From Mantamonas sphyraenae STR306 (Eukaryota; Protista; CRuMs), in contig JAPMXV010000003.1 of assembly GCA_026936335.1 (NCBI GenBank), positions 310,001-374,000 of the forward strand: a stretch of 64,000 bases of DNA. The letters run 5' to 3'. Positions 30,451-41,541 of this stretch are shown here, one piece after another (the first letter of the stretch is position 1; each line of letters starts with the position of its first letter). Made by a program: the position numbers and the translations under genes. The notes below the pieces were generated by a model, which did no database searches, was not told where the DNA came from, and saw nothing but the letters and a program-made list of their open reading frames with translations.

Positions 30451-33400
30451 TCATTGGGTCTTAAAGGTCTCTACGCTGTCAAAGTGAGAGCGGATGCGTC
30501 GGACGTCTTGCGGGTCGACCACACAGATGGATTGTTGGGTCCAGTCGTCTCGGTCCACCTGTAGGTTTGGAAGCGAGAGGGTTTGTGCGTCTTGTCGGAT
30601 GTACAGCACCGCTGTGGGGCATTCGTACGCCGCATCGAGAAAGGCGGTTTGGAGCGGCGTGGGTTGTGCGCCAAACAGGCGCTGGTGCAGGCTTGTGGCA
30701 AATTCAGCTGCGTTTGCGTCGTCTGCTGCCTCGATGTGTCCAATCGCAGCGATGGCAATGTTGCTCTCGACCATAGACTTGGCCATGCGGGAGCTGTTGC
30801 ATCCATTGAGGACAATCAGCTTGCGCGGGTTGGAGAGATCCAACATGAGCTGGAGCCACTCGCCTTTGAGGTGTCCATCATCGATGTAGACACCTTGCAC
30901 GCCCATGTGTGTGCAAAGGTGGACAACGTGGTGCACGGATGTGCGCAGTCGTTGCTTGATCACGTCGATGGGTGCTTGGGCGACTGCGTTTGCGGTGTCC
31001 ACGGTGGAAGGGAGGCTGGTCATCAGGCTGTTCGTTTCGTGGAGGACAGCATGGAGGTCCGCTTTGTCCCCGGTGTACACACAGCCGAGGATGAGCAGCT
31101 TGTCTTCTTGGGGAGGGTGCGATTCGTCAAGTCGCGCCTGGAGTTCTTGCAGCGCGTTGCGAAGGTTGTTCAGCTCATCGGAGTTGCTTGAGGAGGAGGC
31201 CCTGTTGTCCAGTTCGGCGTTTGTTTCGTCCAGGTGAATGCGGAGCGTTGCGGCCTCGGCGAGGGATAAGCTGGAGGCGACTGAGAGCTCGTTGACCCAG
31301 CCGAGGATATCCTTGTACTTTCGACCAAGGAGCTTGATGTTGCAAACGGAGGCGTCCAGTCCCTGTTCCAATGTGTCGACGCGGCTGTTCACACTCGCAA
31401 TGGAGCTTTCGTGCGTGTTCAGGCGATTCTTGAGCTTCCATAGCTCCTCCTCGTCCTTCATCACGCGTCCATACAGCAGGGCCTGTGTCTTCAGGTGGAC
31501 CATGTGCACGTGGCAGGACCCACACTTCTCCTTGTCCACCTCCGCCAACTCCTGCACATCCACACGCAGCTCATGCTGTGCCCAGTCCATCCGCAGCACC
31601 TCCTCCACCTCTCCACTCGCCAAGCACCGGTGACACAGCGGATAGCACCTCAGTCCACTGCCCAGCCCATCACACAGCCCACTCTCCTCTGCCACACTCC
31701 GCACAAGTGCCTCCACTTTGCCCATCGTCTCCACCACATCAAACCAGTCGTCGTCGTCGCTGGCTACCACCACGTCTACATACCGCGTGTGTGGCTCATG
31801 CACAAGAACAATGTGCGGTGCATCCCGGGGCCACACATGCATCCAGTTCAAGCGCACTTGCTCTGGCACCCTCTCCTTTCCCACACCGTCTGGGAACGCC
31901 TCAATCAGCCGCACCTGCACCAGATTGAACAGCGCAGGTGGCAGCATGTGCCACTTCTCTGACTGCCATGCCTCGTCCTGCTGCACCTGCTCCTCATCAT
32001 CTCCTTCACCTTCCTGACCAGTCACCACCCACACAAACCGCCGTCCAATCCGACATGTGTTCTCCGCCATCCACTTCCGAGGCAGCTCCATCTCCATCGT
32101 CCGCAGAAACGGAAACACAAGCGTGTCTTCTCCCACACGTGCACACATCTCCACCTCACACAGCAGCTCCAGCAGCACATCCGCAGCCTCGAGGCTTACG
32201 GAGGTGGAGTATCCCATCAGGCTTGCGTGGATCCTGCCTACTTGCACTCTCAATGCGTCATCCCATTGCACCAGCCCGTGGTGCTTCCCTTCCCCGATCT
32301 GCTTCCCTTTGTCCAGCCCTTGCACCTCTGCACCACTCACAAAACCTCCCATCAGCTTCGCCAGCCACACAGGGTCCAGCACAACCACACCTGACCCTCT
32401 GTGCCACACCACTTCCTGCATGTGGTGCAGTTCCTCCAGCGATAAATGAAAGATCCGCCCACTCATGCTCGGAAAATGCTCCGCCATCTCCTCATTCCCC
32501 TTCACCATCGCCTCCAGCTCCTCCACACGCATCCACGGCTGTTCCATCTCACCACTCTCCCTCAGTCCCTGCACATACTTCTGCAGCTCCACCGTCCCGC
32601 GTGGCACCATCCTCTCCTCTGCCAGTGCCACACTCGCTTCCTCCAGACTGCCCAGCAGCCCATCCACGTTGCCCTTCCACACATCTCCATCCACCACAAA
32701 CACTCCCTTCTCTGCATCCATACGCAGCTGCTCGTACCTCTTGCTCTCCTTCCACCCTTGCACCCACCCTTGCACCATCCCACGTGCCTCTTCCCGATCC
32801 ATCCTCTCCCCCACCTTCACCGTCTCTCCCAGATCTGCATGTGTCACCACAAACCACATCTGCGGCTTCTTCTTCCCTGCCACCTTGCTCGCCACCTTGC
32901 TCGCCACCATGTCCAGCCACACCTCCAGCTCCGCACGTGCTGCCTCCATGTCCACCCTGTGCCCACCTGCCACCGCATCCCACACCACCATCGATGCCAC
33001 AAGCACAAACACCCCGCCCTGGCCCATCAACAGGTACTGGTGGCCCACCCAGTACTCTGCCTGGCCGCCATAGTCACTGATACGCACACGCACATCCCCA
33101 CCCTTCAGATCAAACTCATACACATCCATGCTGTGTGTCGCATCCGTCGTCCTCTCTTTGCAATCCAGCCCCCGCTTCAGCACCTTTTCGAAGATACCCC
33201 AAGTCCACTCTCCCCACGAGGTGCTCCTCTTCATCGTGTCAATCAATGTTGTCTTGCCCTGTCCTCCATGTCCCAACACCTTCCAATTGACCCATTCCCA
33301 CGCAGTGTCCATCCTTCCCAGATACTCCACCACCGCCTGCGCCCCCTTCTTCACCACGAACCCTGGCACATCGTCCAGCGCCTCATCATGCTCCAGCAGC

Positions 33401-36286
33401 AAGTGCTCCAGCTTCCCCAGCTTCGCCATTGCCTGTCTGGGCAGTACCCTGATTCCTGATCGAGTGAGGTCCAGCACGAGCAGATGCTCCCACTGGCCAA
33501 TCTCCTCAGGAAGCTCACTCACCACTTCCTCACCCTCTGCGACAAGACAGAGAGCATGTTTGTCAACACAGTGCAAGCTAGCCAGCTGCTCTGCCAGATC
33601 TTGGGTTGATGTGAACGACACGAGGCCAACTCGCTCGGCCCAAGCACCCAGCATGGCCTTGTGTGTGTGTGGATGTCTTTCAGCAGCGATGGTGAACGCC
33701 ACCACGCTCGGGAAAGGATCATCTCCAACGAAGGCGCCACCAGCAATGAGAACTCTTGCTGTCTCTGTGTGCCCGTTTTGTGCTGCAATGTGCAACGGTG
33801 TCCGTCCGTTCTCCGTTGCCTTGTCCACGTCTGCTCCCCTGTCCAGCAGCATCGTCGCCGTTTCTGTGTGCCCGTTCTCTGCTGCACCGTGCAACGGTGT
33901 CCATTCGTTCTCCGTTGCCTTGTCCACGTCTGCTCCCCTGTCCAGCAGCATCGTCGCCGTTTCTGTGTGCCCGTTCTCTGCTGCACCGTGCAACGGTGTC
34001 CATCCGTTCTCCGTTGCCTTGTCCACGTCTGCTCCCCTGTCCAGCAGCATCGTCGCCGTTTCTGTGTGCCCGATCTCTGCTGCACCGTGCAACGGTGTCC
34101 ATCCGTTCTCCGTTGCCTTGTCCACGTCTGCTCCCCTGTCCAGCAGCATCGTCGCCGTTTCTGTGTGCCCGTTCTCTGCTGCACCGTGCAACGGTGTCCA
34201 TCCGTTCTCCGTTGCCTTGTCCACGTCTGCTCCCCTGTCCAGCAGCATCGTCGCCGTTTCTGTGTGCCCGATCTCTGCTGCACCGTGCAACGGTGTCCAT
34301 CCGTTCTCCGATGCCTTGTCCACGTCTGCTCCCTTCTCCAGCAGCATCGTCACAATCTCTGTGTGCCCGTTCTCTGCTGCACCGTGCAACGGTGTCCATC
34401 CGTTCTTCTGCGCCTTGTCCAACTCTGCTCCCTTCTCCAGCAGCATCGACACAATCTCTGTGTGCCCGTTCTTTGCTGCAATGTACAACGGTGTCCGTCC
34501 GTCCCTCTCCGCCTTGTCCACGTCTGCTCCCTTCTCCAGCAGCATCGTCACAATCTCTGTGTGCCCGTTCTCTGCTGCACCGTGCAACGGTGTCCATCCG
34601 TTCTTCTGCGCCTTGTCCAACTCTGCTCCCTTCTCCAGCAGCATCGTCACAATCTCTGTGTGCCCGTTCTTTGCTGCAATGTACAACGGTGTCCGTCCGT
34701 TCCTCTCCGCCTTGTCCACCCCTGCTTCCTTGTCCAGCAGCATCGACACAATCTCTGTGTGCCCGTTCTCTGCTGCAATGTACAACGGTGTCTGCCCGTA
34801 CTTGTCCGCCTTGTCCACCCCTGCTTCCTTGTCCAGCAGCATCGACACAATCTCTGTGTGCCCGTTCTCTGCTGCAATGTACAACGGTGTCTGCCCGTAC
34901 TTGTCCGCCTTGTCCACCCCTGCTTCCTTGTCCAGCAGCATCGACACAATCTCTGTGTGCCCGTTCTTTGCTGCAATGTACAACGGTGTCTGCCCGTACT
35001 TTGTCCGCCTTGTCCACCCCTGCTTCCTTGTCCAGCAGCATCGACACAATCTCTGTGTGCCCGTTCTTTGCTGCAATGTACAACGGTGTCTGCCCGTCCC
35101 TCTCCGCCTTGTCCAACCCTGCTTCCTTGTCCAGCAGCATCGACACAATCTCTGTGTGCCCGTTCTCTGCTGCAATGTACAACGGTGTCTGCCCGTACTT
35201 GTCCGCCTTGTCCACCCCTGCTTCCTTGTCCAGCAGCATCGACACAATCTCTGTGTGCCCGTTCTTTGCTGCAATGTACAACGGTGTCTGCCCGTCCCTC
35301 TCCGCCTTGTCCAACCCTGCTTCCTTGTCCAGCAGCATCATCACAATCTCTGTGTGCCCGTTCTTTGCTGCAATGTACAACGGTGTCCGTCCGTCCCTCT
35401 CCGCCTTGTCCACCCCTGCTTCCTTGTCCAGCAGCATCGACACAATCTCTGTGTGCCCGTTCTCTGCTGCAATGTACAACGGTGTCTGCCCGTACTTGTC
35501 CGCCTTGTCCACCCCTGCTTCCTTGTCCAGCAGCATCGACACAATCTCTGTGTGCCCGTTCTTTGCTGCAATGTACAACGGTGTCTGCCCGTACTTGTCC
35601 GCCTTGTCCACCCCTGCTTCCTTGTCCAGCAGCATCGACACAATCTCTGTGTGCCCGTTCTTTGCTGCAATGTACAACGGTGTCTGCCCGTACTTGTCCG
35701 CCTTGTCCAACCCTGCTCCCTTGTCCAGCAGCATCGACACAATCTCTGTGTGCCCGTTGTATGCTGCAACGTGCAACGGTGTCCACCCGTCCGCTTCCCC
35801 TTTGTTCACCTCTGCGCCCTTCTCCAGAAGCATCGTCGCCGTTTCTGTGTGCCCGCTGTCTGCTGCAAAGTGCAACGGCGTGGCTTCGTCCTCGTCTGCC
35901 TTGTTCACCTCTGCTCCCTTGTCCAGCAGCATCGACACAATCTCTGTGTGCCCGTTGTATGCTGCAACGTGCAACGGTGTCCACCCGTCCGACCCCCCTT
36001 TGTTCACCTCTGCGCGCTTCTCCAGAAGCATCGTCGCCGTTTCTGTGTGCCCGTTGTACGCTGCAATGTACAACGGTGTCCGTCCGTACTTGTCCGCTTT
36101 AACCACCTCTGCTCCCTTCTCCAACAGCACCTCCACCGTGTCTGTGTGCCCCTCCCGTGCTGCAAGAAACAGCGCAGTCCTCCCATCTCCATCTTGCATC
36201 CCAACATCCACCCCCTCATCCACCAACCTCTGCACCAACTCCACGTTGCCTGCTTCCGCGGCCTCTAAAAGCTCATTTCCGCTCAT
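30451..36286 (-). CDS. Ankyrin-LRR-Roc-COR-coiled coil-CHAT ROCO protein with one +1 frameshift at ~35001 (sequencing error or inactivation)
   Basis: About 26 ankyrin repeats; LRRs (LPEEIGQWEHLLVLDLTRSGIRVLP); Roc motifs GHGGQGKTT, T, DYGGQ, THAD; COR VVLDPVWL; CHAT VVHLCTH...LIVLNGCNS. ORFs 33719..36289 and 30451..35274 join by removing one T at 35000-35002. Confidence 0.85.
33740..36200 (-). repeat. Tandem array of about 25 near-identical 99-bp ankyrin-coding units
   Basis: The core TCTGTGTGCCCG...CAACGGTGTC recurs every 99 bp, and several units are identical. Confidence 0.97.
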
Positions 36287-36788: not shown

Positions 36789-38139
36789 TTAATCGTCCTT
36801 CTTGGATCCACCACCACGCAGACGACCCGTGCGGCGGGCTGCAATCAGACCCACCTTGCGACCGTGCGGCGTGTCACGACGCACCGTCGAAGCATGACCA
36901 ATATGCTGATGGTTACCACCACCATGCGGATGCTCCACCGGGTTCATCGCCACACCACGCACATGCGGCCAGCTGTTGCGCTTCACACGGTACTTGTGGT
37001 ACGCGCGGCCTGCCTTCAGCATCGGCTTGTCCATGCGGCCACCGCCTGCAACAATGCCAATCATCGCACGGCAGTTCGAGTTCACCGTCTTCTTGCTGCC
37101 CGACGGCAGCTTCACACGCGTCGTACCGTTCTCCTTGTGCGAAATAATCGTCGCGTAGTTGCCCGACGCACGTGCGTACTTGCCACGGTCTCCCGGCAGT
37201 GCCTCCACATTGCAGATGATCGTACCCTCGGGGCACGACGACAGCGGCACAATGTTGCCGATCGACAGCGTCGCCTTCTTGCCTGCGTAGATGAACTGGC
37301 CAGTCGAGATGCCCTCCGCAGCAATAAACAGCTCCTTGTCCACCTTGTAGCGGTACGGGTTCTTGAAGTGCACGCGGATCAGAGGTGCTCCACGTCCCGG
37401 GTCGTGCTCCACAGAGCGAACCACTCCCTTCAGGAAGCCGCGGCGCTCACCGTAGTCCAGACGGCGGTGCTTGGCCGCGCCCAGGCGGTGGTGCGTGTGC
37501 GATCTGAACACAGATCCATAACCTTTGCGCTGACCTGTGTGTCGTCGAGTGCAGTGCCGCCGTGGATGTGTGTCAGACTCGTCCGCCTGCGTGTCTGCGT
37601 GCCGATTCTTTCCCGCCCTCTGCGTATTTGCATGCACCTCCACGCTCCACCCACAAAACCGCCCCTCCCACACATGGCTGTGTCGGTCTGGGTGGCGCTG
37701 GACATGACACACGCTGCAGTGTATGCTGGTGTGTCCTGTGTCGCAGTGACCATGATCGTATGTGTCTGCCTGCGTCCCAGTCCCTCGCAACCTGCGCTTG
37801 CAGGAGGGGCTTGAAAAAATGCACGCCGTCCCGCTCACGCTCCGGCCGAGGCACAGGCACAGGGGAAGCAGACAGACACGTGGGACGCACGTGACGCATG
37901 CGCACAGGGTGTTCCATGCGCTGGGTACGTGTGTGTCTGCCGTGTCGTGTCTGCCTCGTCCTGTGTGCGCGTGGCAAGGCGTGCGTTTGTCTCGGCCGAG
38001 GCGACGCGGATCTTGCACAGGCGCCAGCGCGCGGGAGACGCATGGAAACGGGTGGGACGAGGTGTGGACGTGTGGGGTGGGGTGGAGGCATGCAGGGGAA
38101 GGTGGTGTGTGCTCACGTACCTCGGATAGTCTTTCCCAT
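36789..38139 (-). CDS. RPL8: 60S ribosomal protein uL2/L8, copy 1 (exons 38139-38121, 37534-36789)
   Basis: [39 protein letters not shown]; 586-bp intron. Confidence 0.98.
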
Positions 38140-38299
38140 GGTTTGTTGTGTTGCTGGGGGTCGGGCGCACGGGCCATGGGGGTGCATGAGCTCACTCAGT
38201 CCTCCCAGACGTTTCTCCAAGGTGTCCCGTGTGACAGGCGAGACCTCTCCCGTCTTGGGTGGATGCATGCATGCGCGCCCATGGAACCAAACACGGACA

Positions 38300-40126
38300 A
38301 TGTCGGAAGGCCTTGACGCCATCCTGCGCTGCTGCATCTGCTTGTCGCGCGTGTCGCACGCAGTGATGTGTCCAAAGTGCAGCCAGATTGCGTGTCGGGA
38401 CTGCATTGCGGTAGGTGGTGGGGCGTGTGGCGGCGGCGTTCTCGGGAGACAGGAAACTCACAGCCGGATCTCCACAGCCGTGGGTTGTTCAGCGCAACGC
38501 GTGTCCTCAGTGTCGCACAACACTGGAGTTGACCGATCTGGTCAAGGCGAGGCACCTTGACGAGCTCATGCAGGTGAGCAGGGAAAGCGGGAGCGCGCGT
38601 CGTCCGTTGCCACAAATCCGGCACCCGCGCATGGCTGACACAGACTCGTGGACACACAGCAAATCCAAGCCCTGGAGGAAAGACAGCTGGAACAAGCCAG
38701 CAAGGCAGCTTCGGCGTCTCCGTCTGATCCGTGCTCAGTGCACGAGTCGATGGCGCTGACGTACCATTGTTCGACCTGCGACACGGCCGTGTGCTCCGAC
38801 TGCGCCATGTTTGGCGAACACCAGGGTCACTCGTTTGAACATCTGAGCGATGTCTACCAGCAGGCAGTGGAACGTGTGCATGCGTCGTCGTCGGTGCTGC
38901 AGGACCGCGTCAAGACAGCGATGGGTCGGCTGTCCGAAGTCAACCAGACGGTGGAGACTCTTTCACGCAGCAAGGACGTGTGCGCCACAGAGATGAAGCT
39001 GGCGGTGGAAGTGATGCTGCGCAACCTCGACGACCAGCTCAAGGGCAAGTTGCTGCCGCTGGTGGAGCTCAAGGCAAACATCACTGGCCAGGTCGAGGAG
39101 ATCGACCAACTGCTCGAGAGCACGCACGAGACTGTGTCCAATGCCACGCGCAGTGAGTTTGTGACCCGTTCCAGGCGCATCCTGAGCGAGATCGAACACT
39201 GTGCACGCCAGGACATCGAGTCGCTGCCACCGGTGGACAAGGCGTTTGTGAACGAGATCACCCCGGGATATGAACTGGGCGAGATGCGCATTGCCAACTA
39301 CGCACAGGTGCGCCAGCAGCAGGAAATCATGTACAGCGGGGTCCTGGCGGCCAGTGCAGGGTTGCGCTGGCGTCTCAAGGTGTACCCGGATGGCAATGGA
39401 GTCGCCAAGGGCAATTTCATCTCTGTGTTTCTCGAGCTCTGTGGCGCGCCGCACCGCGAAGCACAGCGCTTCGACTACCAGCTGGAGGTGCTTCATGCCA
39501 CAGATGAGCGACTGAACATTTCGCGCGCGTTCTCTAGCGTGTTTATCCACGGGGAGTGCTGGGGGTACAATCGCTTCTTCAAGATTGCCAATCTGCTGGA
39601 GGACGGCTATCTGCACGGCGACGGCGAACTTGTGCTGCGGTTTTCAGTGCGTCCACCGACGTACCATGACGCAAGCGTGTTGCAGGATGCATACATCAAG
39701 TTTCTGGAGGAGGATCGGAAGACGCAGCATGAACTCGTCGAACGATTGAATCATCTGGTGGACAAGATGACAGAGAGCAGCCCAGAACTGTCGTCGACCC
39801 TCGACGCGCTCATGGCGAGCACTGTGGACGCGGTGGAGGTCGTGGAGGTGGCTGGCGAAGACACGGGGGACAAGGTAGAGGAAGTGGACGTCGAGGACGA
39901 AGGCGAAGGGGAAGAGGAGGATGACGAGGACGAGGATGAAGAAGAGGATGACGAGGACGAGGATGGAGGGGAGGATGCGGACGATGAGAAGGATAGCAAG
40001 GACAGCACGGGAGAATTGTCAGAGACAACGTCGTCGGGCGAAAGCGTCGGGAAGCAGCCACAGCTGTTGTTTCCGATGGAGGCAGTGGCCATGTCTGGTC
40101 TGGATGACACAGACGACTCCAATTGA
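38300..40126 (+). CDS. TRIM37: TRIM37-like E3 ligase: RING, B-box, coiled coil, MATH, acidic tail (exons 38300-38410, 38478-38573, 38660-40126)
   Basis: CCIC..CPKCS..C.DCI..CPQCR; [25 protein letters not shown]; [11 protein letters not shown]...[10 protein letters not shown]...VRPPTY. Confidence 0.93.
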
Positions 40127-40190
40127 AATGTACAGTGAGCTCATGCACCCCCATGGCCCGTGCGCCCGACCCCCAGCAACACAACAAACC

Positions 40191-41541
40191 ATGGGAAAGA
40201 CTATCCGAGGTACGTGAGCACACACCACCTTCTCCTGCATGCCTCCACTCCACCCCACACGTCCACACCTCGTCCCACCCGTTTCCATGCGTCTCCCGCG
40301 CGCTGGCGCCTGTGCAAGATCCGCGTCGCCTCGGCCGAGACAAACGCACACCTTGCCACGCGCACACAGGACGAGGCAGACACGACACGGCAGACACACA
40401 CGTACCCAGCGCATGGAACACCCTGTGCGCATCCGTCACGTGCGTCCCACGTGTCTGTCTGCTTCCCCTGTGCCTGTGCCTCGGTCGGAGCGTGAGCGGG
40501 ACGGCGTGCATTTTTTCAAGCCCCTCCTGCAAGCGCAGGTTGCGAGGGACTGGGACGCAAGCAGACACACACGGACATGGTCGTTGCGACACAGGACACA
40601 CCAGCATACACTGCAGCGTGTGTCATGTCCAGCGACGCCCAGGCCGACACAGCCATGTGTGGGAGGGGCGGTTTTGTGGGTGGAGCGTGGAGGTGCATGC
40701 AAATACGCAGAGGGCGGGAAAGAATCGGCACGCAGACACGCACACGCACGAGTCTGACACACATCCACGGCGGCACTGCACTCGACGACACACAGGTCAG
40801 CGCAAAGGTTATGGATCTGTGTTCAGATCGCACACGCACCACCGCCTGGGCGCGGCCAAGCACCGCCGCCTGGACTACGGTGAGCGCCGCGGCTTCCTGA
40901 AGGGAGTGGTTCGCTCTGTGGAGCACGACCCGGGACGCGGAGCACCTCTGATCCGCGTGCACTTCAAGAACCCGTACCGCTACAAGGTGGACAAGGAGCT
41001 GTTTATTGCTGCGGAGGGCATCTCGACTGGCCAGTTCATCTACGCAGGCAAGAAGGCGACGCTGTCGATCGGCAACATTGTGCCGCTGTCGTCGTGCCCC
41101 GAGGGTACGATCATCTGCAATGTGGAGGCACTGCCGGGAGACCGTGGCAAGTACGCACGTGCGTCGGGCAACTACGCGACGATTATTTCGCACAAGGAGA
41201 ACGGTACGACGCGTGTGAAGCTGCCGTCGGGCAGCAAGAAGACGGTGAACTCGAACTGCCGTGCGATGATTGGCATTGTTGCAGGCGGTGGCCGCATGGA
41301 CAAGCCGATGCTGAAGGCAGGCCGCGCGTACCACAAGTACCGTGTGAAGCGCAACAGCTGGCCGCATGTGCGTGGTGTGGCGATGAACCCGGTGGAGCAT
41401 CCGCATGGTGGTGGTAACCATCAGCATATTGGTCATGCTTCGACGGTGCGTCGTGACACGCCGCACGGTCGCAAGGTGGGACTGATTGCAGCCCGCCGCA
41501 CGGGTCGTCTGCGTGGTGGTGGATCCAAGAAGGACGATTAA
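40191..41541 (+). CDS. RPL8: 60S ribosomal protein uL2/L8, copy 2 (exons 40191-40209, 40796-41541)
   Basis: Protein identical to copy 1. Confidence 0.98.

Follow-up and report, generated by a model that had tools for sequence, protein, structure and literature searches.

The ankyrin array and its gene

We analyzed a window of 64,000 nucleotides from the flagellate Mantamonas sphyraenae STR306 (GenBank assembly GCA_026936335.1, contig JAPMXV010000003.1, positions 310,001 to 374,000), in which a large gene begins with a long tandem array of ankyrin (ANK) units. The coding strand of the array is the minus strand, as it is for all features of the gene given below, and positions count from the first letter of the window unless another contig is named. 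Tandem Repeats Finder detected one array at 33762-36165 with a period of 99, 24.3 copies, 90% matches and 1% indels. The translation resolves it into 25 in-register units of 33 codons each, running from 36193 to 33718 between an N-terminal cap and a degenerate C-terminal cap; each unit is 99 bp long except unit 13, which has 100 bp. The start codon (ATG at 36286) and the N-terminal capping half-repeat (amino acids 1-31, 36194-36286) are like the N-termini of paralogs and of ANK-only genes, and the capping repeat at the C-terminal end, with its linker, occupies 33520-33717 (rows 26-27 of the unit table). Apart from one break in unit 13, the array is a continuous reading frame in which no introns were seen, and the repeat, being free of stops, also gives rise to the long open reading frames found across it on the plus strand and in the other frames. 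We searched the two halves of the array on either side of the break separately and masked the frameshifted codon (N/X) throughout; the halves scored E 1.8e-121 and 8.7e-120 with Pfam Ank and E 1e-123 to 1e-132 with Ank_2. With their length of 33 residues, their TPLH..AA..GH core and scores above the cut-offs of Pfam PF00023/PF12796, the units are ankyrin repeats.

The units form blocks of relatives, as the original prediction, made from the letters of the window, had described and as the difference matrix now bears out. Units 2-5 (35699-36094) are two copies of a two-unit dimer in which ETAT-type and EIVS-type second helices alternate; units 2 and 4 are 13 nt apart and form a clade with a support of 98, and units 3 and 5 are 7 nt apart. 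Units 6-15 (34708-35698) make up the youngest block, carrying DKY or ERD hairpins, with pairs 0-9 nt apart of 99, a mean amino-acid identity of 92% over 330 residues and exact internal repeats of 163-197 bp. They are followed by two copies of a 198-bp dimer, ER[ND]-YI-K / QKN-HG-E, in units 16-19 (34312-34707), where units 16 and 18 differ by 2 nt and units 17 and 19 by 1 nt. The S/TEN block of units 20-24 (33817-34311), with pairs 0-3 nt apart and 96% amino-acid identity over 165 residues, alternates EI and EN with a 198-bp period and contains the longest exact internal repeat, 207 bp at an offset of 198. Four sets of units are identical in DNA (6=7=13, 8=14=15, 10=12 and 21=23). The framework codons are near fixed, as predicted: among the 25 units, T6 is ACA in 23, P7 is CCG in 24, L8 is TTG in 24, A11 is GCA in 25, A12 is GCA in 24, G15 is GGG in 25, H16 is CAC in 25, T17 is ACA in 25, M22 is present in 23, L23 is CTG in 22 and L24 is CTG in 23. 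Every variant that had been listed for the hairpin triplet, for the residue before TPL (Q/R/W/A) and for helix 1 (YI/HG/HV/HF; KN/EN/EI/YN/DS/QN) was also found.

Downstream of the 25 ANK units, the sequence predicts a short leucine-rich repeat (LRR) segment, a Roc GTPase, a COR-like region, a coiled coil and a CHAT protease, in this order. The LRR segment (33343-33561) matches Pfam LRR_14 and LRR_8, and its family profile finds LRR proteins of solved structure with E values of 1e-16 to 1e-35. The Roc-type GTPase (32674-33306) has all three of the G1, G3 and G4 motifs, namely the P-loop GHGGQGKTT at 33247-33273, DYGGQ at 33061-33075 and THAD at 32833-32844, and a profile match over the whole LRRK2 Roc domain: the profile of 11 genomic homologs aligns in one stretch with LRRK2 residues 1254-1610 (the last LRRs, Roc and the start of COR-A) at E 7.6e-17. 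GTP_EFTU gave a weak match in 10 of the 10 family members scanned, and Pfam Roc a non-significant one (E 0.24 at best) in 2 of them. The first ~100 residues of the COR-like region (31459-32673), which is 72-80% conserved among paralogs, match LRRK2 COR-A; the Pfam COR-A model had no match in the ROCO family of this gene. The coiled coil predicted between COR and the protease (31099-31458) appears as long helices in both structure models and has a weak Trimer_CC match. The CHAT/caspase-like protease domain lies at 30517-31098, with its conserved His at 30907-30909 and Cys at 30799-30801, both invariant in 11 genomic homologs, and the stop codon follows at 30451-30453. A model of this domain, with a predicted local distance difference test score (pLDDT) of 76, found SAVED-CHAT (8tl0) as its best match (E 3e-9), ahead of other clan CD proteases, and two of its genomic homologs score above the Pfam cut-off (PF12770) at 29.4 and 24.2 bits. 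No match to NACHT or NB-ARC was found in the gene, the NB-ARC matches of the genome being at other loci, and because it has neither domain it is not an NLR/STAND receptor. By analogy, it may nevertheless work like an NLR.

Internal units stay alike by events inside their own gene

The homogenization at the DNA level that had been claimed for the array goes far beyond that of any other ankyrin array in the genome. Internal unit pairs that are at least 95% identical amount to 18% here, including 8 identical pairs, and to at most 3% in each of 15 other ankyrin arrays. We measured synonymous diversity at the four-fold degenerate third positions of seven invariant framework codons. It is 0.025 over the whole array and drops to 0.000 in units 6-24, whereas the other ankyrin arrays show 0.14-0.38; the zero value in units 6-24 holds even between blocks that are 9-23 nt apart of 99. 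With the framework silent sites so close to uniform here and so diverse elsewhere, the invariance of the DNA reflects recent common descent or homogenization and not codon preference.

A maximum-likelihood tree of the units places the events inside this gene. The last unit of the array falls into one group with its counterparts from all seven paralogs (support 99), and the first units of the paralogs cluster, the first unit of this array adjoining them in an unresolved clade. By contrast with the last units, 14 internal units form a clade found only in this gene, and 7 more form a clade with a single foreign unit. Gene labels change 6 times on the tree, compared with 21.6 times when shuffled, and none of 500 shuffles reached so low a number. 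Clustering by gene for internal units, with last units grouped across paralogs, is the mark of expansion or concerted evolution within a gene; the internal units arose through duplication, unequal crossover or conversion in their own gene, and these keep them alike. The search for the array's units in other genes that had been proposed at the outset came back empty: a four-unit probe found no other genomic locus above 83% identity, so that the units are not shared with other genes. Exchange among units is seen in the four-gamete test, which 77 of 231 informative site pairs fail, and in mosaics: position 30 can be V or L beside either a DKY or an ERD hairpin, and unit 9 joins a hairpin like that of unit 18 to a body of the block type. 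The predicted origin of mosaics by unequal crossover and conversion is backed by these failures and by the gene-wise clustering, but not by a distance-structured incompatibility (PHI-like) test of recombination, which was not significant (p 0.1).

The break in unit 13 is a single +1 frame shift. It comes from one surplus A, relative to the sister units, in the short run of A at 35000-35002 and leaves the assembled gene frameshifted; in every other base, unit 13 equals units 6 and 7. The diploid, free-living flagellate M. sphyraenae was sequenced with PacBio reads at 106x (read N50 11 kb), and Racon and Pilon were used to polish its FALCON assembly (PMC10492846). Short-read unitigs from four DNA libraries of one study have zero depth over bins 34896-35288, which include the break; such holes prove nothing, and zero depth there is what would be expected if the short reads lacked the extra base. 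Since unit 13 is identical to two other units and short reads cannot be placed uniquely in it, a one-base error of the long reads could escape polishing, and we consider the extra base to be, on balance, probably an uncorrected long-read or assembly error. If the frame shift were real, the gene would be dead or dying, a recent pseudogene in which the pattern of the array is a relic. That the assembly carries the shift and that pseudogenes are common in large receptor families (PMC11378527) both speak for this, but the break is the only lesion in 5.8 kb and is flanked by halves that stay open for 428 and ~1,515 codons, it sits in just such a unit as short-read polishing cannot reach (PMC10492846), and, as a weaker point, no unitig with the extra base appeared in four short-read runs; we regard a pseudogene as unlikely. 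Programmed frameshifting at 35000-35002 was considered and rejected: the site has no known slippery motif and is the sister-unit sequence plus one base.

A related concern is that the assembler created or distorted the number or the order of the units. Exact repeats of up to 207 bp invite such errors, the short-read unitigs are too short to span the array and leave 34896-35288 uncovered, and one indel error is likely to be present already. Against this, reads with an N50 of 11 kb at 106x span an array of 2.5 kb, and the unit number is therefore probably right; most bins of the array are covered by unitigs from the four libraries, paralogs of the same construction carry 2-15 units, and the frame is kept apart from one base. 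An artifact of this kind appears very improbable. Paralogs cross-map among the unitigs, and the 'joints' of unitigs carry foreign inserted letters that probably come from them. Separately, unitigs at 32888-33001 and 36539 have 2-5x the depth of the unique flanks and several bases unlike the assembly, where a cross-mapping paralog or base errors in the assembly are possible.

The gene family and where its units vary

The gene has at least 12 paralogs, in which the LRR-Roc-COR core is 66-80% identical (72-80% among the nine closest) and the number of ankyrin units ranges from 2 to 25. The close paralogs, on contigs 74, 56, 52, 22, 77 and 51, end soon after the coiled coil in an acidic Glu-rich tail without CHAT, and the window gene is the only member of its ROCO subfamily with a CHAT domain. 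ROCO-CHAT genes that are more distantly related lie on contigs 68 and 6, and their N-termini carry LRRs in place of ankyrin arrays; four of them, of ~1,800-2,000 amino acids and with CHAT above the Pfam cut-off, lie in tandem on contig 68 (200700-234633). A CHAT-like domain is present at no fewer than 20 loci, many of them in large open reading frames (e.g. contigs 67, 68, 72, 73 and 76), and in at least 11 loci it lies directly upstream of NB-ARC in CHAT-NB-ARC-TPR proteins. That ROCO and NB-ARC-TPR proteins share CHAT fits a common executioner module. One CHAT-NB-ARC-TPR gene, on contig 72 (184000-190500), carries a second kind of homogenized array, a TPR array of 129 bp in 15.5 copies with 91% matches and no indels. 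ANK-only genes with 10-36 units each form tandem clusters on contig 51 (207800-222650, six genes) and contig 67 (249180-260020, three genes), and their unit consensus and variable positions are the same as those of the ROCO arrays; the apparent 'giant arrays' of 10-15 kb on these two contigs proved to be these clusters of separate genes. A look-up of the exact product of the window gene found nothing on record. Elsewhere in the window, near-identical translations on opposite strands at 36789-38316 and 39810-40607 flank a B-box/MATH (TRIM37-like) gene at 38648-40126, and the pair resembles an inverted duplication, ribosomal protein L8 sequence included.

Within the array, nucleotide identity among units (86%) exceeds amino-acid identity (72%), and the units differ mostly at positions 1, 2, 3, 5, 9, 10 and 13. 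Amino-acid entropy is highest at positions 1 (2.17 bits), 2 (1.93), 5 (1.69), 13 (1.62), 3 (1.58), 29 (1.51) and 10 (1.49) and moderate at 21, 27, 9, 19, 20, 25, 26, 30, 14 and 31, and fifteen positions are invariant in units 2-24. Nonsynonymous changes make up the overwhelming share of the differences, which gather at positions of the hairpin and the inner helix, and the uniform or mostly synonymous variation that had been named beforehand as a sign to the contrary was not seen. The claim that the units are homogenized except at ligand-contact codons is right about the hairpin and helix 1, but it leaves out variation in helix 2 and the loop, where positions 19-21 (IVS/IVT/TAT), 25-27 and 29-31 have two to three states each; the loop types are DKE, EKG and DRG, with G, D or E at position 29.

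The variable positions had also been said to match those randomized in DARPins, the designed consensus ankyrin libraries reported by Binz et al. 2003. We take the DARPin library positions to be 2, 3, 5, 13, 14 and 33, with position 1 a fixed Asp. Four of these six are among the five most variable positions here (hypergeometric P ~0.002, calculated by hand), which supports the match, but position 33 is almost constant in the array, position 14 is only moderately variable, and position 1 is the most variable of all. The array and the designed libraries (general design in PMC8683736) share a constant consensus framework and diversity at positions 2, 3, 5 and 13, joined family-wide by 14 and 33. 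Unlike a DARPin, the array is natural, has 25 units in place of 2-3, varies also at positions 1, 9 and 10, in helix 2 and in the loop while keeping 33 near fixed, and uses a small alphabet of 2-6 residues where the libraries are fully randomized.

A candidate recognition surface and its alternatives

The ratio of nonsynonymous to synonymous rates (omega) over the aligned units gave results that depend on how the codons are divided. In pairwise Nei-Gojobori comparisons, omega is 1.72 at the DARPin positions and 1.16 at the rest. When minimal events were counted, the position set of the original prediction, which is post hoc, gave 26:1 nonsynonymous to synonymous events, against 14.5:8.5 at the rest (p 0.007). 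To avoid circularity, we drew a further set from other paralogs, namely the positions with at least 1.5 bits in six other ROCO paralogs (1, 2, 3, 5, 9, 10, 13, 14, 21, 29 and 33). With this family-defined set, omega is 2.54 against 0.43 at the rest in units 2-24 (p 0.005), and 4.84 against 0.99 in units 6-24 (p 0.003). These values suggest diversifying selection within the array; they suggest it and do not demonstrate it, because they rest on few events and on simple ways of counting, and leave recombination out of the models. The proximity of silent polymorphisms to variable codons was not significant (p 0.25).

We propose that the array is the N-terminal sensor of a large cytosolic ROCO-CHAT protein, in which a homogenized framework carries a reshuffled ligand surface, a reading on which we are evenly divided. 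The variable residues would line the concave groove of the ankyrin stack and form a putative ligand-binding surface, whose diversity would come from new combinations of a few unit types. On ligand binding, the Roc-COR switch might then be freed and the CHAT protease turned on, in the manner of NLR-type receptors.

Several results weigh against this proposal, besides the frameshifted state of the assembled gene and the outcome of the distance-based recombination test. On the structural side, an AlphaFold model of the 858-residue core with 10 close paralogs had a pLDDT of 39.5 and was unusable, the CHAT domain of the window gene itself (~200 residues) reaches Pfam E 7e-5 and 22.8 bits, just under the cut-off of 24, and a word-based protein search with the LRR-Roc-COR-CHAT piece (E 1e-5) found no homolog outside the genome. 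On the side of the surface, the variation in helix 2 and the loop lies off the presumed binding face, and the same positions are variable in 241 other ankyrin units of the genome (entropy rho 0.71-0.74). As for selection, minimal events at the DARPin positions (16:2 nonsynonymous to synonymous) do not differ significantly from those at the rest (24.5:7.5; Fisher p 0.29), and independent events within the young blocks are few, ~9. Parsimony codon counts on a tree of 84 units from eight genes, which are near saturation, give omega ~0.6-1.1 at hypervariable positions and 0-0.5 at framework positions, with position 2 as the exception (5.2, p 0.011 uncorrected). Given the same variable positions in the other units and a family-wide rate that is about neutral, relaxed constraint explains much of the pattern; and as the hypervariable positions are the least constrained of any ankyrin repeat, neutrality may be enough.

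Much of this pattern is what a neutral recent amplification would produce, in which slippage or unequal crossover multiplied a few already diverged unit types, the surface is unconstrained and the protein is an ordinary ROCO signaling scaffold. It would account for an entropy profile shared across the genome, for a family-wide omega near 1 and for the lack of significance of the DARPin partition, and it would agree with the helix-2 types ETAT and EIV, which are old variants found family-wide. The order ANK-LRR-Roc-COR, moreover, is also that of LRRK2, which is not known as an immune receptor. Such an amplification fits less well with an omega of 2.5-4.8 for a codon set that was defined independently, with the lack of any framework silent difference between blocks 9-23 of 99 nt apart, with the exchange among units that the four-gamete failures show, and with a multigene family of 2-25 units whose swappable protease effector is common to NB-ARC-TPR genes. 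We consider it possible but doubtful. The dN/dS check that had been suggested pointed to selection with the family-defined set and not with the DARPin partition or family-wide. The original prediction of a rapidly recombining recognition surface is supported in part: homogenization within the gene, the variable sites and an apt parallel to fungal NLRs hold, the neutral family-wide rate speaks against it, and the speed of recombination and the ligand contacts are conjectural.

The closest known system is the highly conserved (HiC) ANK repeats of fungal NLRs. The HiC ANK, TPR and WD repeats of these proteins were described in 2014 as more than 85% identical between repeats over more than 100 amino acids (PMC4986451), and units 6-15 and 20-24 of our array surpass 85% between repeats over at least 100 residues. 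Both systems have ANK units of 33 residues with this degree of identity, variable sites in the hairpin and inner helix, exchange among units, and a family of many genes in which repeat number varies and effector domains can be swapped, so that the predicted parallel with the concerted evolution of fungal NLRs is apt (PMC4986451). They differ in the switch, which is NACHT or NB-ARC in the fungal proteins and a Roc-COR GTPase here, in the arrangement, with the repeats N-terminal and the effector C-terminal here, and in the host, a CRuMs flagellate and not a fungus. The array thus resembles those of fast-diversifying fungal immune receptors, and by this analogy we infer a similar function.

The LRR-ROCO proteins of brown algae are candidate immune receptors (Zambounis et al. 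2012, PMC3341825; PMC11378527), and they share with the Mantamonas genes an expanded ROCO family, a hypervariable repeat sensor and coexisting NB-ARC-TPR genes. Positive selection has been proposed on their concave face, which is comparable to the selection suggested here. Unlike the array, in which ANK units follow each other in one continuous frame, their repeats are LRRs encoded one per exon and shuffled as exons, and no CHAT effector has been reported for them. LRRK2 has the collinear match described above, and DAPK1 joins ANK-Roc-COR to a cell-death domain. Neither the kinase and WD40 domains nor the death domain of these proteins is found in the window gene, which has the predicted CHAT protease in their place, and the ankyrin domains of the animal proteins are short and not internally homogenized. 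With the bacterial defense proteases SAVED-CHAT (8tl0) and TPR-CHAT/Csx29, the gene shares the fold of the C-terminal domain (E 3e-9), the His/Cys pair and the fusion to a sensor or switch; the activating module here would be a ROCO GTPase with ankyrins and not a cyclic-nucleotide sensor or a CRISPR complex. Our search of the literature turned up no report connecting ROCO to a CHAT domain, and none connecting Mantamonas to NLR, ROCO or ankyrin genes.

Homogenized arrays with variable binding positions are the route by which fungal NLRs reach new specificities, and fungi have been reported to be strongly enriched in them. The same construction on ROCO-CHAT and CHAT-NB-ARC-TPR genes in CRuMs would extend this mechanism to near the base of Amorphea, and it would offer a testable role as receptor and protease for the ROCO GTPases, few of which have a known function. 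For consensus ankyrin design, the array is a natural experiment as well, with 25 stacked near-consensus units and a small alphabet of residues at the library positions. More tentatively, Mantamonas, a flagellate that branches deeply, might run innate recognition on two chassis, ROCO GTPases and NB-ARC ATPases, both of which would be joined to the same CHAT protease and to homogenized, reshuffled sensor arrays (ANK units in the one, the 43-residue TPR units of contig 72 in the other). If this were true, the diversification of receptors by repeat arrays would be much older than fungi or easily reinvented, and ROCO proteins could be NLR-like death switches with a caspase-like executioner.

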